IMG/VR virus record: IMGVR_UViG_3300044712_000810
Coordinates: 1-64,000 of that record
Length of the DNA stretch: 64,000 nt
Direction: 5' to 3' (one strand)
The notes below the pieces were generated by a model that was not told where the DNA came from, did not search any database, and was given only the letters and a program-made list of their open reading frames with translations. The stretch's first letter is position 1. The number at the start of each line of letters is the position of its first letter. The translations under genes and the position numbers were made by a program. This document shows positions 6,061-47,578 of the stretch, piece by piece.

Positions 6061-6112
6061 AATAAGTGTGCCAAGACCTAATTACTTTACTCAAACCTTT
6101 GGAGGATCCATC

Positions 6113-25770: not shown

Positions 25771-26046
25771 ATGTGGGCACTAGTTGAATTTCTTGTTTTC
25801 GTTATGGCGTGTGCTTTTGTTGTTACGCAACTTTTGTTGCCAGCAATAAGAAACACACCATATTTTCCGGTTTTCAGAAAAACTGGAAAACAGGTGACAA
25901 AGACCGAATGTGAAATCAAAACACTCAACGAACTCGAACAAATACAAACACTGGAGGAGACACGCGATGAACTTGCTGGACGAATTGAAAGAAAGGTTCG
26001 AAAAGGATCCGAGGAGATCGTCGATGGGACAGTCGATGGAAAGTAA
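25771..26046 (+). CDS. Small membrane-anchored hypothetical protein
   Basis: N-terminal hydrophobic helix, GGGAGG RBS. Confidence 0.65.
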   Translation: MWALVEFLVFVMACAFVVTQLLLPAIRNTPYFPVFRKTGKQVTKTECEIKTLNELEQIQTLEETRDELAGRIERKVRKGSEEIVDGTVDGK

Positions 26047-33072: not shown

Positions 33073-33963
33073 ATGCTTAATGATGGATTTTATAAAAAAG
33101 TTGAAGATCCAAAATATTTAAAAAACATACTTTACGGCGATACAGACTCTTTGTTCCTTTGTATCCCAACTAAAACATCAGCAAAACAAATGTCAATTGA
33201 CGAAATTATTAAAATTTCAAAAGATACTGGTAAGAATATAAATGATTTAATTCAACAGTATATGGTTAAATATTTGTTTCCAAAAGCAAATATTGATCCT
33301 AATTTTAATAAGACTCAATTTAAAAACGAAATGATTATGTCGAGTATCATGTTCCTCGACGTTAAAAAACAGTATGCATATAAACTACTAGTAAAAGAAG
33401 GTGTTGTACTAACAGAACCTGAAACCAAATATACCGGTATTCAGATTGTTAGAACCAATACTGCAAAAATTACTAGTAAACTTTTAAGAGAAATGATTGA
33501 GGATGTTATTCTTAATCCACAAATTACAAGAAAACAACGTATTCCAAAACTTATTGAACTCGTTGATGCAAAACACAAAGTATTTAATGATTTTGCAGAC
33601 GCATGTGATTTTACCGAAATAGGTATTCCATGTAAATGGCAAAAACAAGATCAACATATTATGGGAATGAAATTATATAATTTCATAATGGAGAAAGAGA
33701 CATTTAACTTAGGATCTTCCGGAAGATTCATCTATTGCAAATTTCATGATACTAGAACATTAAATCTTTCCGGTATAGATACTGATAAATTAAACGGTAT
33801 AGTCGTACCATATTCATATGATAAAGATAAACTTCGTGATGCAATGGCTAAATATAAAATCATCATCGATAGACAAACACAATGGGACACACTGTACTCC
33901 AAGACTTGTCAACGCTTAACTGAACTAGTAAAACTGATCGATAAGAGATCAGAAGGGAAGTAA
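33073..33963 (+). CDS. Family-B DNA polymerase, C-terminal part (palm motif C + thumb)
   Basis: ILYGDTDSLF, KKQYAY, KYTGIQIVRTNT. Confidence 0.9.
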   Translation: MLNDGFYKKVEDPKYLKNILYGDTDSLFLCIPTKTSAKQMSIDEIIKISKDTGKNINDLIQQYMVKYLFPKANIDPNFNKTQFKNEMIMSSIMFLDVKKQYAYKLLVKEGVVLTEPETKYTGIQIVRTNTAKITSKLLREMIEDVILNPQITRKQRIPKLIELVDAKHKVFNDFADACDFTEIGIPCKWQKQDQHIMGMKLYNFIMEKETFNLGSSGRFIYCKFHDTRTLNLSGIDTDKLNGIVVPYSYDKDKLRDAMAKYKIIIDRQTQWDTLYSKTCQRLTELVKLIDKRSEGK

Positions 33964-34626: not shown

Positions 34627-34701
34627 TCTGGGTTAGTTCAGTGGCAGAACGTCTGGCTGTTAACCAGAATGTCGGGAGTTCGAACCTCTCACCCAGAGCC
34701 A
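34627..34701 (+). tRNA. tRNA-Asn(GTT)
   Basis: Cloverleaf: TCTGGGT/ACCCAGA, anticodon arm TCTGG-CTGTTAA-CCAGA, T arm GGGAG-TTCGAAC-CTCTC, G73, encoded CCA. Confidence 0.95.
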
Positions 34702-34720
34702 TTTTTATTTTGGAGAATTC

Positions 34721-34906
34721 ATGGAAAATAAACAAGACCATGCAACAATCTCAATCGGATTTAATTCCGACGTAGAATTTTTTGTTATGAAAAACAATGG
34801 AAGAATACTAACAACACTTTCATCCAAAGACAACCATTTACTCAAAATTGAATTACCCGTCGAGGTAATGCGACAGTTAGTTGAAGAATACAAGCACTAC
34901 CTGTAG
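34721..34906 (+). CDS. Hypothetical protein
   Basis: GGAG RBS. Confidence 0.6.
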   Translation: MENKQDHATISIGFNSDVEFFVMKNNGRILTTLSSKDNHLLKIELPVEVMRQLVEEYKHYL

Positions 34907-34927
34907 TACCAATTTTTTAATTTGATT

Positions 34928-35410
34928 ATGAACACATACATTATAGCAGATACACATTTTGGACATGCCAACATTATCAAATACTGTAATAGACCATTTA
35001 CCGATTTTATCGAAATGGACTATATCCTAAAACGAAACTGGAATTCAACAGTAGGAATTAATGATACTGTATGGCATCTTGGCGATTTTGCAATGTTACC
35101 AAAACAAAACATTCAACAGCTTATTCCTCAGCTTAATGGTAGGAAAAAAATAGTACTCGGAAATCATGATAGATATGAGAAACAATTCTATTTAGATTCC
35201 GGATTTGAAGAAGTATATGAACACAATGAAGTATTCTTTGAGAAGTACTCAATGTCTCATCATCCTCTCCCGAATCCTACGATCCTAAATATTCACGGTC
35301 ACGTTCACAATACAAGTTTCGACTTTAAAAGTGAATTGCACGTCTGTGTATGTGTCGAACTACATGATTACAAACCGATACTACTCAACAGTATAATACC
35401 GCAAATTTAA
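34928..35410 (+). CDS. Calcineurin-like metallophosphoesterase
   Basis: ADTHFGH, HLGDF, GNHD, SHHP, HGHVH. Confidence 0.9.
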   Translation: MNTYIIADTHFGHANIIKYCNRPFTDFIEMDYILKRNWNSTVGINDTVWHLGDFAMLPKQNIQQLIPQLNGRKKIVLGNHDRYEKQFYLDSGFEEVYEHNEVFFEKYSMSHHPLPNPTILNIHGHVHNTSFDFKSELHVCVCVELHDYKPILLNSIIPQI

Positions 35411-35452
35411 CATCGCGGTCATTATAGAATAAGAATATGGGAGATTGGATTT

Positions 35453-35653
35453 ATGGAAAGTGGTACAGTTAAGTGGTTTGATGAGAAGAAAGGTTACGGT
35501 TTTATTAGCAGCAATGGTGATGATCTATTCGTGCATTTCAGTGATATCCAAGCAAAGGGATTCAGAAAGCTCACAGAAGGTCAGGAAGTAAAGTTCAAAG
35601 TAGCTAAAGGACAAAACGGAAAGAAAAAGGCAGTCGAAGTAACTGCTGCTTAA
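35453..35653 (+). CDS. Cold-shock domain RNA chaperone
   Basis: [33 protein letters not shown]. Confidence 0.95.
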
Positions 35654-35826
35654 TTTTAAGATTTACGGCCTTGATTAATTAAGATTCTAAAAATTTAAAA
35701 TGTCGTACCCAAATTATATTAAAAATGTCGTGCAAAAATTATAAATTATTTATTAGATAATTCTAACGATGGGACACTCGCTGTGTCCCATTTTTTAGTT
35801 TTTTTTTATTTTAATATTCAATTTAC

Positions 35827-35838
35827 TCATATAGAAAT
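35827..35838 (+). promoter_or_regulatory. TCATATAGAAAT putative promoter
   Basis: Follows the hairpin ATGGGACAC...GTGTCCCAT-TTTTT. Confidence 0.7.
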
Positions 35839-35879
35839 ATTATAATAGGCACTAACGCCTAAACATACAAGGAGGCATT

Positions 35880-36317
35880 ATGAAACGCAAAGACAAAGAT
35901 GACTTGAGGCTCATCGTCAAAGACGGTGAGATACATGTGAACGCCGATCTGACCATCCGCATGTTCGACAGAACTCGCGGAGGAAAGGCTGATCCTCTGT
36001 TCCCGCTGTGCGATATCGCACACTGGCTGAACAAGAATCGGCACAGCACACCACAGTTAGCAAGAGCAATCGAACGACTGGCAGAAGATCATCGGTGCAA
36101 GTCCAAAGTGTTCTGTGACAAGAACACAATGGGCATGTACTGCACCAACCTCGCCGGTTTGAAGTTGTTGAATGCGACGGATCACAGCACCGAGGTTTTC
36201 AGTAATCTCCTGCTGAAGATGATGTTGCACTTCGACGCCGATTTCGCCGCGAACTTCAAAGCGGCTGCAGGCATCAACAACAACAAGAGCGGAAAAGTCG
36301 TGCAAATGGCCGGCTAA
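35880..36317 (+). CDS. Hypothetical protein, weak BRO-N-like resemblance, GC-rich codons
   Basis: AAGGAGG RBS; PLFPLCDIAHWL...AIERL...TNLAGLKLL pattern loosely BRO-like. Confidence 0.65.
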   Translation: MKRKDKDDLRLIVKDGEIHVNADLTIRMFDRTRGGKADPLFPLCDIAHWLNKNRHSTPQLARAIERLAEDHRCKSKVFCDKNTMGMYCTNLAGLKLLNATDHSTEVFSNLLLKMMLHFDADFAANFKAAAGINNNKSGKVVQMAG

Positions 36318-36361
36318 CAAGCGGGGGCTTCGGCCCCCGTTTCTACTCATAGGAGAAACAT

Positions 36362-37174
36362 ATGGAAATGCCTTCTGAAGTACAAGACATGGTTGACAAT
36401 CTTCTTAAATTCGATGGCATTGACATTGCCGAAAGGATAACTGGAAAAACATGCAACAACGATGAAGCAACCGAAGCACTTGGTGTTGCATTATCAATTG
36501 AACATAACCATCACAAGAACGAACAACTGAAAAAAATCAATGATACCTACATGGGTATTTCATTTGATGATTTTTTAATAATTGCTAAAAATCTCGGATT
36601 CGAAGCAATCTATGAATACGAATTCGAGTACACATCGCAAGAATACGAGTTCCGCGATGAAAAACAAATCGAGATGTTCAATTACGAACACTCGATACTC
36701 TTGATCGCCAACAGTTTCAGTGGACGGTTAAACCGCGCTGAGATGTATTACAACTGGAAGCCACATGTTTTAAAAGGTACTTTCGGAATTGCGTCGTCCG
36801 GCGGAATGATTTCCAAATACAAAGTGCCACAACACTTAATTGACTTGGATCTCAAAGAAGAAACATACAAATATTTCCGTGGCTATATGCCATGGGATAT
36901 CTGGTGCGGGCATCATGATGTTCGCGAAGCATTTATGTTCAAATTTAACAGATTGCTCGAACATGGTAAGTTTGTCAAGTTATGGTTGGAAAAACCATTT
37001 CTATGGCTTCATGACTATGTCGAACAAACAATATTTGCAGGTTCATATTCAAATGAAAGTGAATACCTGCGTAATAAACTAACACAGATCAATCACATTG
37101 ATCACTGGCCGGATGAAGTTAAGATGAGAGTTATTCCAATAGTCGATCAACGCGACTATTTTCGTCAAGTGTAA
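36362..37174 (+). CDS. Hypothetical protein
   Basis: AGGAG RBS, 270 aa, followed by terminator. Confidence 0.75.
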   Translation: MEMPSEVQDMVDNLLKFDGIDIAERITGKTCNNDEATEALGVALSIEHNHHKNEQLKKINDTYMGISFDDFLIIAKNLGFEAIYEYEFEYTSQEYEFRDEKQIEMFNYEHSILLIANSFSGRLNRAEMYYNWKPHVLKGTFGIASSGGMISKYKVPQHLIDLDLKEETYKYFRGYMPWDIWCGHHDVREAFMFKFNRLLEHGKFVKLWLEKPFLWLHDYVEQTIFAGSYSNESEYLRNKLTQINHIDHWPDEVKMRVIPIVDQRDYFRQV

Positions 37175-37221
37175 CACAAGAATGGGGGTGGAAACACCCC
37201 CATTTTTAATATTCTCTTTTT

Positions 37222-37233
37222 TCATATAGAAAT
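37222..37233 (+). promoter_or_regulatory. TCATATAGAAAT putative promoter of the Ro60/ncRNA operon
   Basis: Follows the terminator GGGGGTG-GAAA-CACCCC-ATTTTT. Confidence 0.7.
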
Positions 37234-37359
37234 AATACCAATGCGCGAGTAACCGTGTCGCCAACTTTTGGTTACATGCGTAAACCATTGATGTGCAAAC
37301 ATCGATGGTTTTATTGCACAGTCCTCCTGTTTAATTTTAACAACCTTTGGGAGGTTTAA

Positions 37360-38982
37360 ATGAAGAAAGTCGTAAAATCAGTGGAAAAGGCAATTTACAA
37401 AAACCCAACAGCGACAGCAGACACTGTCAACAAACACGGCACAAAAGCTTGGACTCAGTCCGATAGCACTCGTGTCGATCAGATCATGATGACAGGTACA
37501 TTTGGAAACTCGTTCTACGCCTCCGGCGACGAACTTGTGAAAGATGCTATCGAAGTCATCGAACGCGTGGCAAAGAAAGATCCTGCGCTGCTTGCATCAA
37601 CCATCGTGAAGGGTCGTAATGACGGCTTCATCAGAACTGCACCGTTAATCGGTCTAACAGTTCTATCGATGCACGCTCCAGCTGAATTTCGTAAAATCTT
37701 CAACGATACCGTGAAAACCGGTAACGACCTTGAAGACTTCATGAAGTTCGCATCAACCATGCGTAAAGGATTCGGAACTGCAATCAAGAAAGCTATGTGG
37801 GGATGGCTGTTTGAAAAGGTAACACCTTTCTACGCAACCAAATACACAAAGCAAATCGCGAACGCAATTTCCGTTTCGCATCCAAGAACACTCGATCCTA
37901 TCTTCGATTACATCATGCAGCACACTGCTGGTAAATCGAGAAACTATGCGGCTGCTCTCAAAAAGTATCCTGCCCTTCGTGGTATGGAAGAAGCAAAGGT
38001 AGCAGTTCAAAACAAAGACTGGAAGAAAGCCCAGAAACTAATCGACGAGCACAGACTCGATCCGACTACTTTTCTTGGCATGGGAACAATGACAAAAGAT
38101 GTGTGGAAATCACTTTCTGCACAATTTGGTGTCATGGCATATCTCAAATACCTTAACAAGATCGTCCGCGAGGATGCTCTTGATCCTAAGGTAATGAGAG
38201 AAAAGCTAAAACCTGAAGTCCTGAACAAGGCAAAGGTTTTCCCATTCCGTCTTTACATCGCAAGAGAAAACATCCAGAACGCAACAGTTCGTGATCATCT
38301 CGCCCAAGTCCTCGACGACTACGGCAAGATTTACAACTGGGAATCTTGGGGTGACAAGCAATTTGTCATCGCACCAGACGTTTCTGGATCAATGGTTCAA
38401 GCTGTACGTGGATCTAAACTAACTCCAGCCACAGTTGCTGGTATGTTCAGTGGATTCCTGTACAAATTCATTCCAGGAAGTATTCTTCTTCCTTGGAGCA
38501 CTGAAGTTCGTCCGAACCTCGTGCGTCCTCGTCAGGACTCTGTTCTGACACATATCGAAAGTATTGCCCGTGCAAACGGCGGTGGAACAGCAATGGCTTC
38601 ACCGATCGATCACATGATCCGCAATAAGATCAAGTGTGACTACTTCATCGGAATCACCGATTCTGAAGAATGGTCTGCACCTGTGACCAGATATGCTTGG
38701 GGCGGACGTAGATCCGATGAAAGACAGTGGATTGATGCTTGGACTGAATACAGAAATAAAGTCAACAAGAATGCGAAAGCAATTCTTCTTCGTGTGGATG
38801 GATACCCAACACAGCCATTCGATGACAAAACAGCTAAAGAAAATGGAATTTACCAGATCTTCGGTTGGTCCGACAACGTACTCAAATACGTTGATTACGT
38901 GATCAATTCTGAAAAATATGTGGTAAAAGAAAAAGAAAAGAAAGTTGAAAAACTTGATAAATATGTAACTATCGAAAGATAG
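37360..38982 (+). CDS. Ro60/Rsr ortholog (TROVE + C-terminal vWA)
   Basis: TGTFGNSFYA, RNDGFIRTAP, FPFRLYIA, vWA MIDAS-like APDVSGSM, GGGTAMASP, ITDSEEW. Confidence 0.9.
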   Translation: MKKVVKSVEKAIYKNPTATADTVNKHGTKAWTQSDSTRVDQIMMTGTFGNSFYASGDELVKDAIEVIERVAKKDPALLASTIVKGRNDGFIRTAPLIGLTVLSMHAPAEFRKIFNDTVKTGNDLEDFMKFASTMRKGFGTAIKKAMWGWLFEKVTPFYATKYTKQIANAISVSHPRTLDPIFDYIMQHTAGKSRNYAAALKKYPALRGMEEAKVAVQNKDWKKAQKLIDEHRLDPTTFLGMGTMTKDVWKSLSAQFGVMAYLKYLNKIVREDALDPKVMREKLKPEVLNKAKVFPFRLYIARENIQNATVRDHLAQVLDDYGKIYNWESWGDKQFVIAPDVSGSMVQAVRGSKLTPATVAGMFSGFLYKFIPGSILLPWSTEVRPNLVRPRQDSVLTHIESIARANGGGTAMASPIDHMIRNKIKCDYFIGITDSEEWSAPVTRYAWGGRRSDERQWIDAWTEYRNKVNKNAKAILLRVDGYPTQPFDDKTAKENGIYQIFGWSDNVLKYVDYVINSEKYVVKEKEKKVEKLDKYVTIER

Positions 38983-39031
38983 TTTTCAGGTGGGAGTTAT
39001 TACACTCCCACCAACTACAAATTTCTAAATT

Positions 39032-39100
39032 TGCAAGGTATCAGTAATAAGTTTCAACGCACTGTTAAAGCCAAAAAGGCTTATTACATTAGTCCTTGCG
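39032..39100 (+). ncRNA. Scaffold RNA unit 1 (Asn GUU anticodon-loop cargo)
   Basis: GCAAGG/CCTTGC closing stem; GTAATAAGTTT/AGGCTTATTAC inner stem; CAAC-GC-A-CTGTTAA-A-GC. Confidence 0.8.
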
Positions 39101-39115
39101 CTTCTTTCAAATTTT

Positions 39116-39338
39116 GGAAGGTATCAGAAAAACGTTCAACGCACATGAAATGCACCCGAGTTAACACTCGTGTAGGTTCGAGTCCTACCCTTGGCACCAA
39201 TCATGGGGACCATCTAGAGAGAAAGTCGAAAGACCGCTTCAAAAGATAGCAATTAAATTTGCAGGTACCCTCCAAATTTTGCCGAGGTGGCGGAATTGGT
39301 AGACGCAGGTAAAAACAATGTTTTTCATCAGTCCTTCC
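39116..39338 (+). ncRNA. Scaffold RNA unit 2 enclosing a circularly permuted tRNA-Leu-like body
   Basis: GGAAGG/CCTTCC; 3' half 39154-39199 (variable arm, T arm, CCTTGGC-A-CCA) precedes 5' half 39281-39310 (GCCGAGGTGGCGGAATTGGTAGACGCA). Confidence 0.85.
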
Positions 39339-39347
39339 GACTTATTT

Positions 39348-39425
39348 TGTGGAGTAGAGTAGTCTGGTCTAACTCGTAGGTCTCATAAGCCTAGTACACA
39401 GGTTCAAATCCTGTCTCCGCAACCA
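39348..39425 (+). tRNA. tRNA-Met(CAT), initiator-like sequence
   Basis: TGTGGAG/CTCCGCA, D stem GAGT/ACTC, TAGGT-CTCATAA-GCCTA, ACAGG-TTCAAAT-CCTGT, ACCA end. Confidence 0.9.
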
Positions 39426-39429
39426 CTTT

Positions 39430-39523
39430 TGAAAGGTAATCCGACAAGATTCAACGTTACCATTATACGTCTATCGGGCAACTCGACGCCCGATCGAAAC
39501 CGTCTTGTCATCTAGTCCTTTCA
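39430..39523 (+). ncRNA. Scaffold RNA unit 3
   Basis: TGAAAGG/CCTTTCA; GACAAGAT/GTCTTGTC; TTCAACG; insert hairpin ATCGGGC/GCCCGAT. Confidence 0.8.
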
Positions 39524-39529
39524 CCCTTT

Positions 39530-39592
39530 TGCAAGGTAAATGAATCTGGATTCAACGGAAAACTGAAAACACCAGATTTAACAGTCCTTGCA
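39530..39592 (+). ncRNA. Scaffold RNA unit 4 (minimal; possible Phe GAA loop CTGAAAA)
   Basis: TGCAAGG/CCTTGCA; AATCTGG/CCAGATT; TTCAACG. Confidence 0.8.
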
Positions 39593-39612
39593 CTTAAAAT
39601 TTCTCACAACTT

Positions 39613-39757
39613 TTGAGAGGTAACCCCGAGTAGGTTCAACGCTATATGGAAGCCGGTGTCATCGGTTCGAATCCGATCTCCTCCATCACAAATCTTTTGG
39701 GGGAGTAGCTCAGTCTGGTAGAGCACGAAAAACAATCTGCTCAATTAGTCCTCTCAA
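39613..39757 (+). ncRNA. Scaffold RNA unit 5 enclosing a circularly permuted tRNA-Ala-like body
   Basis: TTGAGAGG/CCTCTCAA; T arm ATCGG-TTCGAAT-CCGAT and CTCCTCC-A (39661-39685) precede GGGGGAGTAGCTCAGTCTGGTAGAGCAC (from 39699); G3:U70. Confidence 0.85.
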
Positions 39758-39771
39758 CTTTTAAAAATTTT

Positions 39772-39846
39772 GGTCTAGTAGCTTAATGGTAGAGCACCTG
39801 CCTGTCGAGCAGCAAGATGTCGGTTCAAATCCGATCTAGATCGCCA
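39772..39846 (+). tRNA. tRNA-Asp(GTC), atypical anticodon arm
   Basis: GGTCTAG/CTAGATC, loop CTGTCGA, GTCGG-TTCAAAT-CCGAT, G73 and CCA. Confidence 0.85.
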
Positions 39847-39851
39847 TCTTT

Positions 39852-39970
39852 TGCAAGGTAACCCCGTGTGGTTTCAACGGAAACTAACAAGTCATCAAAA
39901 CTGGTTACAGTAGGATTCGAAGCCTACAACACCTTCGGGTGAAACGAGCCACACAAACCATGTCCTTGCA
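39852..39970 (+). ncRNA. Scaffold RNA unit 6 (T-arm-like and UUCG hairpins)
   Basis: TGCAAGG/CCTTGCA; GTGTGGTTT/GAGCCACAC; GTAGG-ATTCGAAG-CCTAC; CACC-TTCG-GGTG. Confidence 0.8.
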
Positions 39971-39981
39971 CTTAAAATTTT

Positions 39982-40067
39982 GGGGATGTTACACAAGCGG
40001 CAACGTGACCTGGCTGTAACCCAGGTGCCTTCGGGCTTCAGAGGTTCGAGTCCTCTCTTCCCCACCA
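39982..40067 (+). tRNA. tRNA-Tyr(GTA)
   Basis: GGGGATG/CTTCCCC, CCTGG-CTGTAAC-CCAGG, long variable arm, AGAGG-TTCGAGT-CCTCT, ACCA. Confidence 0.92.
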
Positions 40068-40085
40068 TTATAATTTGGAGATATT

Positions 40086-40481
40086 ATGTTTGATTTCAAT
40101 AAATGCGACAATCCAAAAAAGCAAGGTAATATTGGAATTGGTATCGCAATCGCATGGTTCGTAAAAAATGGTTGTACCGTATCTATTCCATTAACAGATT
40201 GTCAAGAATATGATCTTGTCATCGATGATATTAATGGAAAATTATACAAAGTTCAAGTTAAAACTACAACATTTAAAGAATTTAATACTTATAAAATTAA
40301 CTTAAAAACCTGTGGTGGCAATCAAAGTTTTAATACAATTAAAAAATTCGATAAAACGAAAGTAGATTTATTATTCATTGTTACCTGTGAAGGTGATATG
40401 TATTTAATTCCAACAAATAAAATAACACAAACAAATTGTTTAAAACTTGGTGAAAAATATCAAGACTGTAAAGTTACTTAA
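40086..40481 (+). CDS. Free-standing PD-(D/E)XK endonuclease (I-Ssp6803I/PDDEXK_5-like)
   Basis: KQGNIG...VSIPL.D...YDLVID...LYKVQVKT...KVDLLFI. Confidence 0.8.
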   Translation: MFDFNKCDNPKKQGNIGIGIAIAWFVKNGCTVSIPLTDCQEYDLVIDDINGKLYKVQVKTTTFKEFNTYKINLKTCGGNQSFNTIKKFDKTKVDLLFIVTCEGDMYLIPTNKITQTNCLKLGEKYQDCKVT

Positions 40482-40494
40482 AATTTCCACTTAT

Positions 40495-40577
40495 TTGAAG
40501 GGTAAACCGACAAGTTTCAACGCTCATAACGTATTCGCGCCATCTTGCGAATCTAACTTGTCACGCAGTCCCTTCAA
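40495..40577 (+). ncRNA. Scaffold RNA unit 7 (Met CAU anticodon-loop cargo)
   Basis: TTGAAGGG/CCCTTCAA; GACAAGTT/AACTTGTC; CAAC-G-CTCATAA-C. Confidence 0.8.
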
Positions 40578-40583
40578 CTTTTT

Positions 40584-40654
40584 TGTGAGGTATCAGTAAT
40601 AAGTTTCAACGCCCCTTGCACGAGCCTAAAACGCTTATTACACAAGTCCTCACA
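40584..40654 (+). ncRNA. Scaffold RNA unit 8 (Ala UGC anticodon-loop cargo)
   Basis: TGTGAGG/CCTCACA; same inner stem as unit 1; GCCC-CTTGCAC-GAGC. Confidence 0.8.
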
Positions 40655-40671
40655 TTTAAATTTCCAAATTT

Positions 40672-40805
40672 TGGAAGGTATCAAGAAACATCCAACGTTA
40701 ACTCCAAACCGGGGGTTATGGTTCAAGTCCATACATTTTGCCAAATAAGGCAGTGTAATGTAATGTAGCATACCGGTTCAACGCAGTTTCTTAAAAGTCC
40801 TTCCA
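40672..40805 (+). ncRNA. Scaffold RNA unit 9 enclosing a permuted tRNA-Trp-like body
   Basis: TGGAAGG/CCTTCCA; CTCCAAA-CCGG, T arm TATGG-TTCAAGT-CCATA, closed acceptor hairpin, then D arm ATGT/GCAT and CCGGT. Confidence 0.75.
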
Positions 40806-40812
40806 CATTTTT

Positions 40813-40880
40813 TGCGAGGTATTCTTCCAGGATTCAACGATCCTCTAAATCGAAAACGACCCTGGATATCAGTCCTCGCG
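40813..40880 (+). ncRNA. Scaffold RNA unit 10 (CGAT-CCTCTAA-ATCG stem-loop, Arg UCU-like)
   Basis: TGCGAGG/CCTCGCG; TCCAGG/CCTGGA; TTCAACG. Confidence 0.8.
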
Positions 40881-40900
40881 ACTTTTTTAAGGAGAACCAC

Positions 40901-41077
40901 ATGTGTAAAGATGAATGCACTTGCGAAGTCAAGTGTCCAATCTGTCAAGAATTGATAGATAAACATGGTGGATTATATCCAAACCAAGAAACAATCAAAG
41001 CCATCGAAGAAGTTCGAAACGGCAAAACAAAAACATTTAATTCAGTTGAAGAGTTATTTAACGAATTACACAAATAA
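40901..41077 (+). CDS. 58-aa protein: Cys-rich N-terminus plus DinJ/RelB-type C-terminal toxin-binding segment (not in ORF track)
   Basis: AAGGAG RBS; hand translation MCKDECTCEVKCPICQELIDKHGGLYPNQETIKAIEEVRNGKTKTFNSVEELFNELHK; followed by terminator CGGGTC-TTCG-GACCC. Confidence 0.75.
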   Translation: MCKDECTCEVKCPICQELIDKHGGLYPNQETIKAIEEVRNGKTKTFNSVEELFNELHK

Positions 41078-41114
41078 CCGGGTCTTCGGACCCAATTTTT
41101 ATTTTTACCTAAAG

Positions 41115-41126
41115 TCATATAGAAAT
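41115..41126 (+). promoter_or_regulatory. TCATATAGAAAT putative promoter
   Basis: Follows the terminator at ~41079-41100. Confidence 0.65.
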
Positions 41127-41282
41127 AGTACAAATACCGAACTTTTTGTTTTTAATATTTGCAGTTTTTACATAGAAATATTTTATTAGAAGTATTGATT
41201 TATCAATACGACAAGATATGTAGTTCTTTGGATTTTGGCTCTCTCAAGGCGCATATCTTGTTGTTTTACTTTAGGAGGATTC

Positions 41283-41552
41283 ATGTCAATTACGCGTAGA
41301 GAAGTAACAAAAACTGTTATTGAGATGACGGATGTAACTTGTGATATTTGTGGTAAAACATATACTTTTGATGCAGATAAAAAACATGAAAATGATGATT
41401 GGATTGAAACGCAAGAATTTCATTATATAAGTTTTCGAGGCGGCTACGGCTCCATATTTGGAGACGGTGATACTGTAACCTGTGATATCTGTCAACATTG
41501 TTTAAAAGACAAGTTGGGAGAATATCTCAAAATCAATGAGGGAGATCTTTAA
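41283..41552 (+). CDS. Small zinc-finger-like hypothetical protein
   Basis: AGGAGG RBS; CDICG...CDICQHC. Confidence 0.7.
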   Translation: MSITRREVTKTVIEMTDVTCDICGKTYTFDADKKHENDDWIETQEFHYISFRGGYGSIFGDGDTVTCDICQHCLKDKLGEYLKINEGDL

Positions 41553-41645
41553 TTGAAAAAACTAAACCTGCCAGATCCCGGAGTCTAGGTCCTATCAGGA
41601 CAGGACTCCTCTGCGTCCAACAACTCAGATAGGAGATACCGTCCT

Positions 41646-42173
41646 ATGAATTTCGTAATTGTATTAAACGCTAACTACGAAATACACCAGAAGGTTAGCG
41701 TAAAACAATGTCTAAGTATGATCAGGCGTCAAGTTGTTGAAGTTATTAAATACTCTGACAAAGTTATTACTACATGCAAAGAGAAGATTCAAATTCCTCT
41801 TATAGTACGTTTAATAACTGTAGTTAGAAAAGTATTTAAAAACAAGATACAATTCACAAAGAAAAACCTTTTTGTACGCGACCAATACATGTGTGCGTAC
41901 TGTGCCCAAAAATTCGAAAGTAAACAACTTTCGGTCGATCATATCCTTCCGGAATCGAGAGGAGGTCCGACTTCTTGGGAAAACTGTGTAACAGCCTGTG
42001 TCAAGTGTAACAACAAGAAAGACAACAAGACACCAAGAGAAGCCGGAATGTTTCTCAAATTCAAACCATTCGAACCAACCATAGCCGAATTCGTGAAACT
42101 AAAAGTAACACAAGACGGACTTGAAAAGTTTGTTAAAGAAATATTTGACCAACTTATGGACGAATGCAAATAA
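41646..42173 (+). CDS. HNH endonuclease (McrA-like)
   Basis: RDQYMCAYC...VDHILPESRGG...WENCVTACVKCNNKK. Confidence 0.92.
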   Translation: MNFVIVLNANYEIHQKVSVKQCLSMIRRQVVEVIKYSDKVITTCKEKIQIPLIVRLITVVRKVFKNKIQFTKKNLFVRDQYMCAYCAQKFESKQLSVDHILPESRGGPTSWENCVTACVKCNNKKDNKTPREAGMFLKFKPFEPTIAEFVKLKVTQDGLEKFVKEIFDQLMDECK

Positions 42174-42217
42174 CAACGTGGGGGCGAAAGCCCCCATTTT
42201 TAGCTGGAGACAAAATC

Positions 42218-42511
42218 ATGTCAAAAACACTAAGTTTTAACAAACCCGAAGATTCAATTTACATTGATGATGTAAAAAGTGAAGATTTTATAACATGTCA
42301 TAATTATGTATTATGCATACAGGATGACACTAAAAAATATATATGGTTTGATGTAGAATCAGCATCTGTTAGTCCTAGAACATTTAATACTATCGAAGAT
42401 GCCGTAATATTTTTAAAAAATAAACATGTTGATGATGAAGAAAAAGTTCTCGTGCATAATAAGCATGATGAATATTTCAGCGAATTAATAAGAATTATAG
42501 AATCACTATAA
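42218..42511 (+). CDS. Hypothetical protein
   Basis: GGAG RBS before ATG 42218. Confidence 0.65.
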   Translation: MSKTLSFNKPEDSIYIDDVKSEDFITCHNYVLCIQDDTKKYIWFDVESASVSPRTFNTIEDAVIFLKNKHVDDEEKVLVHNKHDEYFSELIRIIESL

Positions 42512-42525
42512 ACTTGGAGTCAACC

Positions 42526-43629
42526 ATGTCGTGTCTGGATAAATGCGCATTTCTTATTCCATATACTCAAATAGAGGCAGGTGCACAAACACAATTGTGC
42601 AACTATTTAAAAGAACCATTTTGCCTCCGCGCAGCTGTAATGCCAGACATCCATACCGGATATGCGTTACCAGTTGGTGCGGTTGTATTGCTCGAAGGAG
42701 TAATATCACCAGCAGCAGTTGGTGTTGATATAGGTTGCGGAATGTGTTGTATTCGTACAGATGTTCCGATCAAACATATCAAAGGAAAAGAAGAAAAACT
42801 ATTTAAACAAATATATTCTACTATTCCAGTTGGATTTGGTAGTCATGCAAAAAAAAGAGACTATCCTGATTTCAAATCAGCAATACTGGATAAAAAACTG
42901 GATGCAGCAATAAATTTAAAATTAAAAGAACAACTTGGAACTCTCGGTGGTGGGAATCACTTTATTGAAATTGGTGAAACACGAGAAGGAAATATAGGAA
43001 TTACTATTCATAGTGGATCACGTAATGCTGGAAAGCAAATATGTGATCATTACTGTGCATTAGCTAAAAAAATTCATACTGAATTAAAAGGTGACTTTCT
43101 ATTCTTCGATCGTGATGAAGGAAAGGCATACTTTCAAGATATGAACTTTATGTTATCATATGCATTAGAAAATCGTTTAAATATGATGGTTGACATTCTT
43201 GATATACTTGGGTTGGATCAAAATCTACTCAAGGAAATCATTAATGAGAATCATAATCATGCCGAAGATCTAGATGGAAAGATTCTGCATCGTAAAGGTG
43301 CAACACCAGCAGCAAAAGACCAATTGGGTGTTATCCCAGGTAATATGCGCGACGGTGTATATATAACTAAAGGTCTTGGCAACGACAAATATCTGTCAAG
43401 TGCAAGTCATGGAGCCGGTCGTAAAGGTTCTAGAACTTGGGCAAAACAAAAAGATACAGTCGAAACATTTGCAAAACTAATGAATGGTATTGTCGCGAAA
43501 GTTGACAAACATACATTGGATGAAGCACCTTGGGCATATAAAAAGATCGAGGATGTAATTAAAGCACAAGAAGGAATTGTGGTTGATATTATCGATCACA
43601 TTAGACCAATCATTAACATCAAAGGATAG
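42526..43629 (+). CDS. rtcB: RtcB 2',3'-cyclic-phosphate/5'-OH RNA ligase
   Basis: MPDIHTG, VGVDIGCG, LGTLGGGNHFIE, IHSGSR, NENHNH, HRKGATP, SASHGAGR, DEAPWAYK. Confidence 0.95.
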   Translation: MSCLDKCAFLIPYTQIEAGAQTQLCNYLKEPFCLRAAVMPDIHTGYALPVGAVVLLEGVISPAAVGVDIGCGMCCIRTDVPIKHIKGKEEKLFKQIYSTIPVGFGSHAKKRDYPDFKSAILDKKLDAAINLKLKEQLGTLGGGNHFIEIGETREGNIGITIHSGSRNAGKQICDHYCALAKKIHTELKGDFLFFDRDEGKAYFQDMNFMLSYALENRLNMMVDILDILGLDQNLLKEIINENHNHAEDLDGKILHRKGATPAAKDQLGVIPGNMRDGVYITKGLGNDKYLSSASHGAGRKGSRTWAKQKDTVETFAKLMNGIVAKVDKHTLDEAPWAYKKIEDVIKAQEGIVVDIIDHIRPIINIKG

Positions 43630-43632
43630 CAT

Positions 43633-43947
43633 ATGATTCTCTACTTTGACAGTAATGAGTTTAATGAAGTTAAAAAGATTTGGGCAAGAGAAGCAATCGA
43701 ACTTGATAAGTTTGATTACGATATTGAAAATCCAAAATATGATGAAGTTATTGCAAAATCTCTTTATGATGTTGCAAAGATTTGTCCTGAACTCGGTGAT
43801 CGTCAAATTTGGGAAGATTTCGTTACTGAAATGTTTGAGAATTGTAACGATTGTGAACCTGAAGATGTCGAAGGTATTGATGTGACAAAATTTATTGCAT
43901 CGTATGATGACATTGATATTGATCCTCTTATCAAACGCGCAGCTTAA
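43633..43947 (+). CDS. Hypothetical acidic protein
   Basis: Tightly packed between rtcB and the AAA gene. Confidence 0.7.
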   Translation: MILYFDSNEFNEVKKIWAREAIELDKFDYDIENPKYDEVIAKSLYDVAKICPELGDRQIWEDFVTEMFENCNDCEPEDVEGIDVTKFIASYDDIDIDPLIKRAA

Positions 43948-43950
43948 AAT

Positions 43951-45204
43951 ATGAAGAAACTATCGAAATCTAAATTGAAAAATAGGGCATCAAGATTGAA
44001 AGCAGTAGTAGGCAGTCCAATGTCTATTGATATGGAATATTATGAGGACACTGTAAAATATCAAGGAGACAAAATGGATCAGGGCGAAGATCTGAATGTT
44101 GGTCTTACGTTTGGCGCTGACTTCGGTTATCCTGTTTATGGCGTTGTTGCCAAAGGTAAAACTGAAGAACTTCTGCGTCATGCAAACAAGACCGGTCTTT
44201 CCGAACACGAAGAATTCAACATGGTCATTGATGGAAAGAAACGTAGTGACGTATTTGAGATTTTTCGCAAATATGGTCGTTGCATGGACTTCCAAAAAAG
44301 AACTTTCGTCTGTATGGCGGAAGATGCTTACATCGGTGTTAACTTCACCGATCGTGATTCCTATAGTGGAATCTATGTTTCCTTTGACGGAAACGATAAA
44401 AACAAATTGATTGAACTTCGCAATCAAATTTATGCAGAACTTAAAGAATTTAAAAAAGTGTGCATTAACTGTGAAGTCAATTGGTATTATGCCAAAGGAT
44501 GCAATCAAGAACTTCAGTCTCAACAGATTCAGGAAGTTCTTGATGATAATGTTTATCCCGAAGCATATCCTTATATTGAAAATCTTGATGAATTCATCAA
44601 TGATTATCTTGCCGGTGATGAACAAGTTCTCATCTTCCTGGGTCCTCCCGGAACCGGTAAAACTCGTTTGATCCGCTACATTCTTAATCGTATGGTCGTC
44701 AAACAAATTGAAAAACAAGGAGTAGGTCTTAGCCGTTATGGCGATGCCTATTTCGAAGATGACGATGATGTAAATATCATGTATACTACCGATGCGAAAG
44801 TATTGGAACATGAAGAGTTCATTGTGGATTTCCTTACCAATAGGCACTCCGCAATGGTTCTTGAAGATATTGACTTTAACCTTCGTCCTCGCATGGATAA
44901 CAACACTTCCATGTATAAACTTCTTGCCTCCAGTGATGGTCTTCTGACCAACCGTGGACGTAAGATGATTATTAGTACCAACGTTGATAGCGTTGCGAAA
45001 ATCGACGAAGCTCTTATTCGTCCCGGACGTTGCTACGGCATCGTTCAATTCCAGAAACTTAATCCCGAACAGGCAAATACGTTTCTGAAAGTTATTGGCA
45101 GTGACGAAACTGTTACTGTTGAAAAAACCATTGCCGAACTTTACGCTATGAAGAAACATACTCGTAGCGGTTCTGGCAACAATATTCGCAAAATCGGATT
45201 CTAG
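43951..45204 (+). CDS. AAA+ ATPase
   Basis: GPPGTGKT, VLEDID, STN, IDEALIRPGRC. Confidence 0.9.
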   Translation: MKKLSKSKLKNRASRLKAVVGSPMSIDMEYYEDTVKYQGDKMDQGEDLNVGLTFGADFGYPVYGVVAKGKTEELLRHANKTGLSEHEEFNMVIDGKKRSDVFEIFRKYGRCMDFQKRTFVCMAEDAYIGVNFTDRDSYSGIYVSFDGNDKNKLIELRNQIYAELKEFKKVCINCEVNWYYAKGCNQELQSQQIQEVLDDNVYPEAYPYIENLDEFINDYLAGDEQVLIFLGPPGTGKTRLIRYILNRMVVKQIEKQGVGLSRYGDAYFEDDDDVNIMYTTDAKVLEHEEFIVDFLTNRHSAMVLEDIDFNLRPRMDNNTSMYKLLASSDGLLTNRGRKMIISTNVDSVAKIDEALIRPGRCYGIVQFQKLNPEQANTFLKVIGSDETVTVEKTIAELYAMKKHTRSGSGNNIRKIGF

Positions 45205-45250
45205 ATTATAGCGGCCCATATACTGGGCCGCATTTTTATTTTTATATGTT

Positions 45251-45262
45251 TCATATAGAAAT
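45251..45262 (+). promoter_or_regulatory. TCATATAGAAAT putative promoter
   Basis: Follows the terminator GCGGCCCA...TGGGCCGC-ATTTTT. Confidence 0.7.
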
Positions 45263-45284
45263 AATCATGTTATGAGGAGGCATT

Positions 45285-45497
45285 ATGAGAACAATAACCA
45301 TGGAAAATGGAAGCATGTACTATGATGAAGAATTTAATTCACTAATCATAGCCAAAAATCTTGAAAATGGCAATGTTTCCGTTTTTACACCATGTACAGA
45401 CTGGGATATAACGTTTAGGTTAGGGCGTCCACAATTTTTTACAACTGTAATAACACGAGAACAATTTAACACGTACATTAGCATGGAGGACTCATGA
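45285..45497 (+). CDS. Hypothetical protein
   Basis: GAGGAGG RBS; ATGA overlap with the vWA gene. Confidence 0.65.
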   Translation: MRTITMENGSMYYDEEFNSLIIAKNLENGNVSVFTPCTDWDITFRLGRPQFFTTVITREQFNTYISMEDS

Positions 45498-46903
45498 CAG
45501 CAAGAGACTGGATTGACGTTTGCATCTCGTTTGACACAACAGGAAGCATGTATCCCTGCCTGGGCGAAGTTCGCTCCAAGATCACCAAAATGGTGGACAC
45601 CCTGTTTTCGAAGATCCCGAATCTTCGTATCGCAATCATCGCTCATGGCGACTACTGCGATGCAGGCCGTCCTTACACCGTTAAGGTGATGGATTTCACC
45701 AACGAAAAGAACACCATCGTCAACTTCGTGAACAAGGTCGAACCGACCGGCGGCGGTGATGCACCTGAATGCTACGAACTGGTTCTCAAAACTGCGAGAA
45801 CTCTTCTCTCGTGGCGTTCCGGCACCTCCAAGTCCATCGTCATGATTGGCGACGACAATCCGCACGGACCTACCTATCCGCAGAACGTCGACAAGATCGA
45901 CTGGCAGAACGAATGCGGCCTGCTGAAAGAAGCCAACGTCAAGGTCTATGGCATTCATGCCATGCCTGGTTGCCGTCGTCACAGCGAAACCTTTTACAGG
46001 GCAATCGCTGCAAGAACCGAAGGCACCTATCTGACCCTGGACCAGTTCGCAGCGATCGAACAGCTCATTCTCGGCATCTGCTACAAACAGGACAGCGTCG
46101 AGAAACTCAACGAATACGTCGAAGTCATCAAGGTCGGTGCCGGTCGTAGCACCCTGCGTAACATCGCAGCACTCACCGGAACCACCTTCGACGAGGCCGA
46201 CTATTCAAAGAAGCACATGCCCAAGGGCCTCGTGCCGGTTCCTTCCGGCCGCTTCCAGGTCTTCACCGTTCCATCGAAGATGGCAATCAAACAGTTCGTC
46301 GTCGATCGCGGAATCCTTTTCAAGAAGGGCCGTGGCTTCTACGAGCTCACCAAGTCCGAAACCGTCCAGCAGTACAAAGAAGTCATTCTGCAGGACAAGA
46401 TCACTGGCGAATTCTACGCCGGTGCTGCCGCTCGCGAAATGCTCGGCCTGCGCCCGCAGATCGAAGGAACTTCTGGTGGCATCCACGAGAAGCTTCGTCC
46501 TGTCGATCTGGACAAATACCGCGTGTTCATCCAGAGCACCTCGGTAAACCGCGCTCTCGTCGCCGGATCTGGCTTCCTTTACGAAGTCGAAGACTGGGAC
46601 AAGAAGGGAGAGACTCTCGAAGTCAAGGAAACCATTCCTGTCGTGGTCGGAAAAACTGCCAAAGCAACCGCCAAGGCTCCGACCAAGGCGACCACCAAGA
46701 CCCCTGCCAAGGCCCCGGCCAAAAGCAGAACGAAACCCACCGTGGTTCACGCCAAGATCACCGGCTTCGTGGTCAAGATCGAAGACGACGGCAAGATCAA
46801 CATCGCAAACGCCTCCGGCGAAAAGCCTTTCATGACCATCGCCGCCGAACACAACTTGGCATCCGCTCTGCGCAAGATCGCAGAAGTCGGAGAATTCAAG
46901 TAA
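45494..46903 (+). CDS. von Willebrand factor A domain protein with Lys/Ala/Thr-rich linker
   Basis: SFDTTGSM MIDAS, TGGGDAPECYE, MIGDDNPH; GC-rich codons. Confidence 0.85.
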   Translation: MTARDWIDVCISFDTTGSMYPCLGEVRSKITKMVDTLFSKIPNLRIAIIAHGDYCDAGRPYTVKVMDFTNEKNTIVNFVNKVEPTGGGDAPECYELVLKTARTLLSWRSGTSKSIVMIGDDNPHGPTYPQNVDKIDWQNECGLLKEANVKVYGIHAMPGCRRHSETFYRAIAARTEGTYLTLDQFAAIEQLILGICYKQDSVEKLNEYVEVIKVGAGRSTLRNIAALTGTTFDEADYSKKHMPKGLVPVPSGRFQVFTVPSKMAIKQFVVDRGILFKKGRGFYELTKSETVQQYKEVILQDKITGEFYAGAAAREMLGLRPQIEGTSGGIHEKLRPVDLDKYRVFIQSTSVNRALVAGSGFLYEVEDWDKKGETLEVKETIPVVVGKTAKATAKAPTKATTKTPAKAPAKSRTKPTVVHAKITGFVVKIEDDGKINIANASGEKPFMTIAAEHNLASALRKIAEVGEFK

Positions 46904-46951
46904 ACCCAACGGGCGGGCCGAAAGGTCCGCCCAATTTTATTTTCTCTTAAC

Positions 46952-47468: not shown

Positions 47469-47578
47469 CAAAAATTAAAGTGGGGGATGGCTTACGTCCC
47501 CCACGCAATTTGATTTCCCTTCTAAAGTTATAAAGAAATAGTTTTATAGTATAAAATCCTTGGGAATTGGGGGTAAGA

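Follow-up and report, generated by a model that had tools for sequence, protein, structure and literature searches.

The locus and its Ro60 gene

The DNA analysed here (the window, 64,000 nucleotides) is the first 64 kb of the 314,837-bp IMG/VR virus record IMGVR_UViG_3300044712_000810, a soil phage genome assembled from a rhizosphere metagenome, with direct terminal repeats, a CheckV completeness of 100% and a GC content of 33%. Nearly all genes up to 55.7 kb lie on the + strand. The region from 34.6 to 46.9 kb had been read, from its letters alone, as a large RNA-repair and anti-ribotoxin locus around the ring protein Ro60 and the RNA ligase RtcB. Every item listed by this sequence-only reading (four tRNAs, a metallophosphoesterase, a cold-shock protein, Ro60/TROVE, ten scaffold RNAs, two endonucleases, a small peptide labelled DinJ-like, RtcB, an AAA ATPase, plus a von Willebrand factor A (vWA) protein) is present in its place on the + strand; the tRNAs were identified by ARAGORN and Rfam, the proteins by Pfam, PHROG and NCBIfam. 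Here we describe the Ro60 gene and the ten Y-RNA-like units that follow it. The conservation of Ro60 and Y RNAs extends from bacteria to humans, in whom Ro60 is an autoantigen of lupus and Sjögren's syndrome.

The gene and the ten units, Y1 to Y10, are listed below with the support for each; R1 is a covariance model described in the next section.

37360-38982, + strand: Ro60/TROVE ring protein with vWA domain (PF25045, E 3e-13; PF05731, E 1.6e-6)
39032-39100, + strand: Y1, short unit; inner stem the same as in Y8, outer stem different
39114-39340, + strand: Y2, long unit with a permuted tRNA-Leu-like module (R1, 24 bits)
39430-39523, + strand: Y3, short unit (signature, fold, R1)
39530-39592, + strand: Y4, shortest unit, 63 nucleotides (nt) (signature, fold, R1)
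39613-39757, + strand: Y5, YrlA-like unit (Rfam YrlA, 36.2 bits; R1, 43.5 bits)
39852-39970, + strand: Y6, T-arm-like hairpin and UUCG-capped minihelix (fold; R1, 31 bits)
40495-40577, + strand: Y7, short unit (signature, fold, R1)
40584-40654, + strand: Y8, short unit, paralogue of Y1 (signature, fold, R1)
40672-40805, + strand: Y9, long unit with a T-arm-like hairpin (signature, fold; missed by R1)
40812-40881, + strand: Y10, short unit (signature, fold, R1)

Residues ~22-440 of the phage protein align to the Ro60 chains 9nen, 1yvp, 2nvo and 9l5y of the PDB, and the structure matches comprise human, Xenopus, Deinococcus and phage phiLo Ro60. Both the TROVE HEAT-repeat ring and the vWA domain with its MIDAS (metal-ion-dependent adhesion site) are present, the latter visible in the translation as a MIDAS-type DVSGS. 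The NCBIfam equivalog for the bacterial orthologue Rsr (NF041674) scores 66 bits against a cut-off of 900, and the phage protein is therefore a divergent Rsr member. It is only 21-26% identical to Ro60 of isolated phages (Mx1, Streptomyces and Gordonia phages, phiLo), while metagenomes hold many homologues at 35-50% identity. The GC content of the gene, 44%, exceeds that of the genome.

Ten units with a common scaffold and different tips

Exactly ten units lie downstream of Ro60, as the sequence-only reading had counted. Their 5' signature, GGTA-N(6-18)-YCAACG, has 10 matches in 39037-40818 and 1 in the other 62 kb of the + strand. All ten are on the + strand, 50-1900 nt downstream of the Ro60 stop codon, and measure 63 to 227 nt. 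They share a fold in which an outer stem of 7-8 bp, whose 5' strand ends in GG, leads through an internal loop into an inner stem of 6-10 bp. The internal loop reads UA.. on its 5' side (4-7 nt) and ..AGU on its 3' side (5-9 nt). Directly after the inner stem stands the motif (U)UCAACG, invariant except for the variant UCCAACG in Y9, and a variable tip follows; an A-rich run (GAAAAC-like) usually precedes the returning strand. Y9 also carries a second GUUCAACG near its 3' side.

Pairing in these stems was examined both within the window and across relatives. The outer stem is paired in 10/10 window units, with three columns changed on both sides, and the cognate inner stems average 8.2 bp, compared with 4.5 bp for mismatched combinations of 5' and 3' strands. 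Among 20 units from 6 phage contigs, found with a detector that demands pairing and aligned to fit the model, 99.3% of outer-stem positions are paired and 6/7 pairs show compensatory change. The covariation score of the same 20 units was reached in 0/500 shuffles, and slid registers did not come close either. The covariance model R1, built from six short units and their outer stem only, recovers three of the four units left out of it (Y2, Y5 and Y6, at the scores listed) and misses Y9. Nor did it find a further unit when run over all 315 kb of the genome, in which the main tRNA array occupies 275-295 kb.

The tips differ. Four of the ten (Y2, Y5, Y6 and Y9) contain tRNA-like parts, and the remaining six are short hairpin types that resemble YrlB. 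In Y2 the tRNA-like parts are permuted: the variable arm is followed by the T arm, then by a 7-bp acceptor stem with its encoded CCA and, past an insert of 80 nt, by the D arm. Y5 has a tip with a T arm, an acceptor stem of 7 bp that a loop closes, and a D arm.

Between Y1 and Y8 the inner stems and 5' loops are identical; their outer stems differ yet compensate, and their tips differ. By sequence comparison, the pair seems to stem from a recent duplication, after which the copies diverged while pairing was kept.

Comparison with known Y RNAs

The units share with Y RNAs a position near Ro60 on one strand, a stem with an internal loop and, in at least one unit, a tRNA-like domain. The closest match to a described RNA is that of Y5 to Rfam YrlA (RF02553), which aligns over all 114 positions of the model, including the inner helix, T arm, acceptor stem, D arm and A-rich 3' junction. 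Its 36.2 bits nevertheless fall short of the gathering score of 69, and the model does not cover the outer stem. The other nine window units gave no YrlA match up to E 10. None of the ten units has the YrlA motif GNCGAAN0-1G in its 5' part; there is one chance match, in the Y2 insert, and (U)UCAACG occupies the position that corresponds to it.

Published phage loci with Ro60 and Y RNAs (mycobacteriophages, CcrColossus and Bacillus phage G, PMC4201824; phiLo with Yrl1 and Yrl2, PMC12135203) are alike in having a TROVE gene with adjacent Y-like genes, usually in or beside clusters of tRNA and transfer-messenger RNA (tmRNA) genes. However, Y RNAs number one or two in those loci and bear a CGAA-type motif, whereas the present Ro60, 21-26% identical to theirs, belongs to another clade, which has an RNA motif of its own and whose phage arrays hold 2-10 units.

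Relatives in phages

Phage-like contigs carry the closest Ro60 homologues, usually next to genes for tRNA and tmRNA. Several carry UUCAACG-type units adjoining Ro60: at least 7 in the contig locus L003, at least 6 in L005, 5 in L020, 3 in L016/L017 and 2 in L015, as counted with an in-house structural detector together with the one-stem model R1 on contigs many of which are truncated. Over 630 kb of the phage's own genome, this detector produced a single false positive. Every relative contig mixes short (63-94 nt) and long (109-149 nt) units, and many of the long ones have a T-loop consensus ~30 nt past the motif. At the gathering score, Rfam found no YrlA in eight of the relatives' loci.

Order and content vary around this core. 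In L016/L017, a temperate-type element, a tRNA-Met gene, three Y units, Ro60 and RtcB follow one another in that order, and this is the only case among the phage relatives in which RtcB stands directly after Ro60. L005 has an Rnl-type ligase 4 kb from Ro60; the same contig carries a group I intron (3135-3364, Rfam 73.8 bits) 7 kb upstream of its Ro60. Genes for tmRNA are also frequent neighbours of Ro60 (L020, L021, L022 and the phages Forza and Comrade).

IMG/VR was also searched. A single-protein search for the locus found none, and an alignment-based one returned 4 loci only. An exact-pattern scan (AGGTA..TTCAACG..AGTCCT) gave 78 single matches, all of which were rejected by R1 and are therefore chance matches; the pattern is too strict because relatives use GGUG/GGUU and AUUCC variants.

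Bacterial counterparts in RNA-repair operons

The nearest cellular Ro60 homologues are two proteins at ~40% identity, one of them from a metagenome-assembled genome of Lentisphaeria, and both are encoded in RNA-repair operons. Their layout comprises a divergent rtcR gene, a sigma-54 promoter (TGGCAC-N5-TTGC), 1-3 UUCAAC-type units and then rsr-(rtcA)-rtcB; in one of the two operons a tRNA-like gene lies between the promoter and rsr. Such units occur in Lentisphaerota/Kiritimatiellia, at 1-3 per locus and just upstream of rsr. The kinship to rsr-yrl-rtcB operons that the sequence-only reading had supposed is thus borne out.

We grouped 80 bacterial Ro60 loci by identity to the phage protein; many of the close-clade contigs are truncated. 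RtcB and RtcR genes were counted as follows.

Close clade, at least 33% identity, mostly the Planctomycetes-Verrucomicrobia-Chlamydiae (PVC) group: 11 loci, RtcB in 6, RtcR in 3
Chloroflexi, 27.5-31% identity: 8 loci, RtcB in 0, RtcR in 0
Distant, below 27.5% identity, mostly Proteobacteria: 61 loci, RtcB in 46, RtcR in 52

Across these loci the UUCAAC-type units are confined to the close clade, where they lie directly upstream of rsr, and none was found beside the more distant bacterial Ro60 genes. The RNA motif therefore travels with the Ro60 protein clade. This co-distribution is the best indirect evidence at hand that the UUCAAC-type RNA would be the Ro60 ligand of that clade. Furthermore, because one RNA type stands beside one Ro60 clade both in phages and in bacterial rtcB operons, the link between Ro60, Y RNA and RtcB is real at the level of the clade.

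The same distribution bears on a different explanation, in which the ten units are not Ro60 ligands but tRNA-derived structured repeats with a different role; they could, for example, be signals for processing or stability of a tRNA cluster, or attenuators, or else elements that homing endonucleases target or have left behind. The units do sit among tRNAs and adjacent to two genes for homing-type endonucleases, they do not carry the Ro60-contact motif published for YrlA, and a single one of them reaches even a sub-threshold YrlA score in Rfam. However, the main tRNA array of the genome, with ~25 tRNAs, has zero units, and the units adjoin one Ro60 clade in every lineage found, including bacteria that have neither phage tRNA clusters nor endonucleases. 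Their terminal stem, internal loop and, in some, tRNA-like tip also make up the architecture of YrlA and YrlB (PMC4201824). We regard this explanation as very improbable.

The Salmonella Typhimurium-type rsr-yrlBA-rtcBA operon, controlled by RtcR and sigma-54 (PMC7790460, PMC4201824), provides a point of comparison. Like it, the phage locus combines Ro60 with Y RNAs that lie within 2 kb on its strand and with RtcB nearby; at least one Y RNA bears a module of T arm, acceptor stem and D arm and at least one is of the short hairpin type. Unlike it, the phage has ten Y-like RNAs rather than two, interleaved with three true tRNAs; its units carry (U)UCAACG in place of GNCGAAN0-1G; its array is broken by a homing-type endonuclease gene; RtcB lies in a separate predicted transcription unit; and RtcR and RtcA are missing. 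Neither RtcA (PF01137) nor RtcR (PF06956) was found anywhere in the 315-kb genome.

RtcB and predicted transcription units

The region was searched for intrinsic terminators. Six terminator-like sites on the + strand divide 34.6-46.9 kb into at least six units; the sites are consensus predictions, and such sites occur at roughly double the frequency found in shuffled sequence.

35768-35792, + strand: terminator-like site after the cold-shock gene
37178-37207, + strand: terminator-like site before Ro60
41080-41103, + strand: strong terminator-like hairpin and T run after a 58-amino acid (aa) open reading frame (ORF)
42178-42197, + strand: terminator-like site after the HNH gene
45211-45231, + strand: terminator-like site after the AAA gene
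46911-46932, + strand: terminator-like site after the vWA gene

One predicted unit, 37.3-41.1 kb, contains Ro60, Y1-Y2, tRNA-Met, Y3-Y5, tRNA-Asp, Y6, tRNA-Tyr, a PD-(D/E)XK endonuclease gene, Y7-Y10 and the 58-aa ORF. From the start of the array (~39.0 kb) to 41080 there is no terminator-like site; the Ro60 gene itself contains two weak ones, at 38100 and 38525, each with 3 G-C pairs.

RtcB heads a further predicted unit, in which it is followed at gaps of 3-4 nt by an acidic 104-aa ORF and the AAA gene.

42526-43629, + strand: RtcB RNA ligase, compact, 367 aa (PF01139, E 3e-80)

By family assignment its substrate ends are 3'-phosphate and 5'-OH. The metal-binding and His-GMP motifs are intact in alignments to PDB 2epg and 1uc2, with the blocks MPDIHTGY, GVDIGCG, GGGNHF, IHSGSR, HRKGAT and SHGAGR in the former. 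The protein is 39% identical to RtcB of the Lentisphaeria rsr-rtcA-rtcB operon. It lies 3.5 kb from Ro60 on the same strand, with two terminator-like sites (41080 and 42178) and two unrelated genes between them. Archease, a candidate cofactor of RtcB, is absent from the genome.

In a rival reading, RtcB would be an independent neighbour and the Ro60/Y array would serve not repair but the hijacking of RNA decay, tethering Ro60 to host PNPase or other exoribonucleases in a RYPER-like complex, for example for host shut-off or for interference with CRISPR RNA maturation. PNPase is absent from the phage genome, and any PNPase partner must therefore come from the host. Such a partnership has a precedent, as phiLo Ro60 and its two Yrl RNAs form ternary complexes with host PNPase in vitro (PMC12135203), and most phage relatives consist of Ro60, Y units and tRNA or tmRNA genes with no RtcB. 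On the other hand, cellular members of the clade are embedded in RtcR-controlled rtcB operons, and RtcB is found again right next to Ro60 in one phage lineage and, in the present genome, not far from it. Hijacking of decay would also be compatible with a role in repair or as a decoy, and it leaves the keeping of ten different tips unexplained. We consider it possible but not likely.

tRNAs at the locus

Three tRNA genes are interleaved with the Y units, and a fourth marks the upstream end of the region.

34627-34701, + strand: tRNA-Asn(GUU) (ARAGORN; Rfam tRNA, 67 bits), the only Asn tRNA of the genome
39348-39425, + strand: tRNA-Met(CAU), within the array (ARAGORN and Rfam)
39772-39846, + strand: tRNA-Asp(GUC), second copy (ARAGORN and Rfam)
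39982-40067, + strand: tRNA-Tyr(GUA), second copy (ARAGORN and Rfam)

The genome has two copies each of tRNA-Asp and tRNA-Tyr, and both times the locus copy has an unusual anticodon loop at positions 37/38. The locus tRNA-Asp reads CU[GUC]GA (G37/A38) against CU[GUC]AC in the main array, and the locus tRNA-Tyr reads CU[GUA]AC (C38) against CU[GUA]AA. By analogy, these differences are a hint of the pattern seen in nuclease-evading phage tRNAs (PMC10264068). Sets of such tRNAs (PMC10264068, PMC11555353) likewise comprise extra copies with altered anticodon loops and RtcB in the same genome; here, however, only two tRNA pairs are informative, and codon supplementation is an equally simple account. 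Of the tRNAs at the locus, three belong to the four GUN-anticodon tRNAs cut by colicin E5, namely Asn, Asp and Tyr.

A tRNA-Met(CAU) gene lies within ~2.3 kb of Ro60 in six loci that represent five lineages: L016/L017 (9767-9840), L021 (9537-9611), L022 (9540-9614), L018 (7670-7739), L113 (4224-4296) and the window (39348-39425). In four of them (the window, L016/L017, L021 and L022) the distance is at most ~400 nt.

Neighbouring genes

The remaining genes of the region, all on the + strand, are as follows.

34928-35410, + strand: calcineurin-like metallophosphoesterase (PF00149, E 1.5e-6; phrog_547, E 1.6e-41; PDB 1xm7)
35453-35653, + strand: cold-shock domain protein (PF00313, E 1e-23)
35880-37174, + strand: two ORFs, of 145 aa (GC content at third codon positions, GC3, 0.67) and 270 aa (phrog_36907)
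40086-40481, + strand: PD-(D/E)XK endonuclease, I-Ssp6803I-like (PF11645, E 6e-18; PDB 2ost, E 0.003)
40901-41077, + strand: 58-aa ORF, the 'DinJ-like peptide' (PF04221, 21.1 bits, cut-off 22.4)
41283-42173, + strand: Zn-ribbon protein (phrog_5435), then HNH endonuclease (41646-42173)
43633-45204, + strand: acidic 104-aa ORF, then classical AAA ATPase (43951-45204; PF00004, E 2e-8; phrog_14322, E 2.5e-41)
45285-46903, + strand: 70-aa ORF, then vWA protein (45494-46903; PF00092, E 6e-7)

Both endonuclease genes are best read, from their sequence relationships, as homing-type insertions, and they do not stand as the parts of a system that the sequence-only reading had made of them. The PD-(D/E)XK gene (PF11645) divides the Y array 6 + 4 and has a GC content of 26% against 43% in its flanks (GC3 0.17). 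The HNH protein is 36.5% identical to an HNH protein in the tRNA region of Mx1. The peptide labelled DinJ-like exists as an ORF, but the label is weak: its C-terminal 32 residues match the tail of RelB (profile positions 51-82 of 82) below the cut-off, its N-terminus is Cys-rich, and neither an N-terminal ribbon-helix-helix match nor a toxin gene beside the ORF was found.

The AAA and vWA proteins had been taken for a chaperone pair, which did not hold. The AAA protein belongs to PF00004, with lids of the Pan/FtsH type, and not to the MoxR clade (AAA_3/AAA_5); for its N-terminal part the ESM Atlas gave only a weak BCS1_N lead, and it gave nothing usable for the 104-aa and 270-aa ORFs. A terminator-like site and the 70-aa ORF lie between the two genes. 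Their composition differs as well: the vWA gene has a GC content of 55% and a GC3 of 0.69, against about 0.3, and the AAA gene has a GC3 of 0.36. On these values, the vWA and 145-aa (GC3 0.67) genes point to separate, recent acquisition. Homologues of the vWA protein in Rctr197k (53%), Rhizobium phage RHph_I1_18 (42%) and crAss001-like phages have no AAA or RtcB neighbours. Those of the AAA protein adjoin HD/HDOD, ribonucleotide reductase or unrelated genes, with neither RtcB nor vWA beside them.

Two AAA contexts stand apart. In L113 (2617-7930) a 36% identical AAA homologue lies 2.7 kb upstream of a TROVE gene of a different clade, with tRNA-Met and tRNA-Gly between, and in the phage ME3 a distance of 2 kb separates an AAA homologue from a relative of the metallophosphoesterase encoded at 34928. 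Both contexts hint weakly at some looser association and do not suffice for a system. On the opposite strand of the AAA gene, a 409-codon open frame (43990-45219, - strand) spans the whole gene in a stretch of 39% GC; it may be a codon-phase artefact.

We compared 16 locus proteins by tblastn with 18 loci, of which 14 are Ro60-anchored (from relatives and isolated phages) and 4 were fetched through RtcB, AAA or vWA. The co-occurrence that the sequence-only reading expected around phage Ro60 held for a small part of the genes: in the 14 Ro60-anchored loci, Ro60 was found in all, RtcB in L016/L017, HNH in Mx1 and nothing else, with no homologue of the metallophosphoesterase, cold-shock, AAA, vWA or small-ORF proteins near Ro60. 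The 4 other loci returned the query gene itself, and ME3 also the metallophosphoesterase 2 kb from the AAA homologue.

These results bear on the proposal that everything from the tRNA-Asn gene to the vWA gene, 34.6-46.9 kb, forms one integrated anti-ribotoxin machine, in which the metallophosphoesterase and cold-shock protein would prepare RNA, Ro60 and its Y RNAs would act as a scaffold, RtcB would seal, and AAA and vWA would remodel. The genes are indeed close together and co-oriented. The Ro60 region of Mx1 also has tRNAs, a calcineurin-like phosphoesterase, a vWA protein and HNH, RtcB of phage Arash has a phosphoesterase gene 3 kb away, and the L113 and ME3 arrangements point the same way. 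However, the six terminator-like sites split the 12 kb and place RtcB two terminators downstream of the Ro60 unit. The absence of most of these genes from the Ro60-anchored loci, the separate occurrence of AAA and vWA homologues from each other and from RtcB, the PF00004 type of the AAA protein, the foreign composition of the vWA gene and the homing type of the endonucleases all speak against a single machine. Established RtcB chemistry does so too, as the enzyme takes 3'-phosphate or cyclic-phosphate ends and needs no 3'-phosphoesterase. An integrated machine of this extent is therefore unlikely. The metallophosphoesterase, cold-shock, AAA, vWA and Zn-ribbon genes, the small ORFs and both endonucleases look like neighbours in a mosaic accessory region rather than demonstrable parts of a module.

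A probable viral Ro60 ribonucleoprotein module

The functional unit would instead be a phage Ro60 ribonucleoprotein module at 37.3-41.1 kb, the viral counterpart of the rtcR-controlled repair operon, with RtcB as a probable, separately transcribed partner. We put the probability of this reading at roughly 70%.

The module may have originated from the bacterial rsr-yrl-(rtcA)-rtcB core of the same Ro60 clade, with loss of RtcR and RtcA and growth of the Y set from 1-3 to 10. Its array would be transcribed together with Ro60 and cut up by tRNA-processing enzymes of the host. Each Y RNA would then dock on Ro60 by means of the common scaffold, which comprises the outer stem with its terminal GG, internal loop and inner stem, UUCAACG, and the A-rich strand opposite that motif, and the ten tips could give one Ro60 ring different partners. 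The four tRNA-mimic tips could engage host PNPase, RNase P or CCA-adding enzyme, or could serve as decoys for anticodon nucleases. RtcB would reseal tRNAs cut to 2',3'-cyclic-phosphate and 5'-OH ends, and the locus tRNA-Asp and tRNA-Tyr, with their changes at 37/38, may be cleavage-resistant spares.

Several observations weigh against parts of this account. The units lack GNCGAAN0-1G, the proposed Ro60 contact (PMC4201824), and the binding of all ten RNAs to the phage Ro60 is inferred from position, conservation and co-distribution only. Because the alignment had been fitted to the model and the detector demands pairing, the pairing counts lean towards structure. Two terminator-like sites, together with a homing HNH gene, lie between RtcB and the Ro60 unit, most phage relatives have no RtcB nearby, and the complete genomes of the Ro60-bearing isolates Mx1, Comrade and Forza contain no RtcB anywhere. 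Finally, the Asn/Asp/Tyr/Met set fits plain codon supplementation in an AT-rich genome more simply.

Previous work gives these ideas a background. Y RNAs tether Ro60 to PNPase, YrlA mimics tRNA, and YrlA and YrlB of M. smegmatis derive from one precursor (PMC4201824). For YrlA's tRNA-like domain, competitive inhibition of an anticodon nuclease has been suggested (PMC7790460), and phage tRNAs escape anticodon nucleases via loop changes (PMC10264068). By analogy with such cases, an anti-ribotoxin role of the locus is plausible. A more specific proposal is that the ten RNAs form a diversified library of adaptors or decoys, in which one Ro60 ring would be served by ten interchangeable RNAs whose tips each recruit another host enzyme or soak up another tRNA-targeting defence nuclease. 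On this view, an arms race with anticodon nucleases of the host would be mirrored in array size, which is 1-3 in bacteria and 2-10 in phages, and (U)UCAACG would be a previously undescribed, clade-wide recognition signal for Ro60. We offer this extension tentatively, as a speculation held with far less assurance than the module itself.

Phage Ro60 with Y RNAs, and Rot/TROVE with RtcB in jumbo phages, were already known (PMC4201824, PMC7824862, PMC12135203). A full-text search of a literature collection found no description of Y-RNA arrays in phages. New is a predicted type of Y RNA with an invariant motif of its own, missed by the Rfam YrlA model, and, from the loci compared, the apparent confinement of this UUCAACG-type RNA to one Ro60 clade common to PVC-group bacteria and phages. 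Also new are tandem phage arrays of 2-10 units, against 1-3 in the bacterial operons. The ten found here are the largest Y-RNA set found; one to four have been described (PMC4201824, PMC12135203), so that the locus is, as the sequence-only reading had it, more elaborate than those known.

One Ro60 with ten Y RNAs on a common scaffold and with different tips amounts to a natural experiment, in which the question of what each tip recruits is directly testable. That phages took the core of an RtcR-controlled repair operon and enlarged its RNA part also bears on tRNA-targeting antiphage defence and on phage counter-measures.

Other observations on the genome

A near-DNA search of GenBank phages gave no close DNA-level match to the window. 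Pieces of 150 nt identical to window DNA are present in one freshwater and one wastewater run, which shows near-identical DNA only.

The main tRNA array contains, at 290747-290821 of the genome, a tRNA with anticodon CUA (amber-suppressor type; labelled 'Pyl' by ARAGORN). Recoding of TAG, considered on account of this tRNA, was rejected because TAG terminates 80/508 long ORFs and readthrough yields no gain in very long ORFs. At 57729-57824 of the window (- strand), ARAGORN calls a 96-nt tRNA-Thr(CGU) without CCA, within a 666-aa ORF; Rfam does not confirm it, and the call is probably false.

Two genes encode the family-B DNA polymerase, with the break between motif B and motif C. The piece at 47567-49681 holds the exonuclease domain together with motifs A (DATSLYPS) and B (KVTMNSTYG), and the piece at 33073-33963, 13.6 kb upstream of the other, begins at motif C (YGDTDS). 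No intein signature was noticed at the split. The region described here, 34.6-46.9 kb, sits exactly between the two halves.

Isolated genes with a GC3 of 0.6-0.85 occur in the window at 5966-6685, 25898-27382, 35856-36317 and 45482-46903, and at about ten more sites in the genome; the vWA gene and the 145-aa gene belong to this set. From their composition, they look like separate recent acquisitions from high-GC donors.

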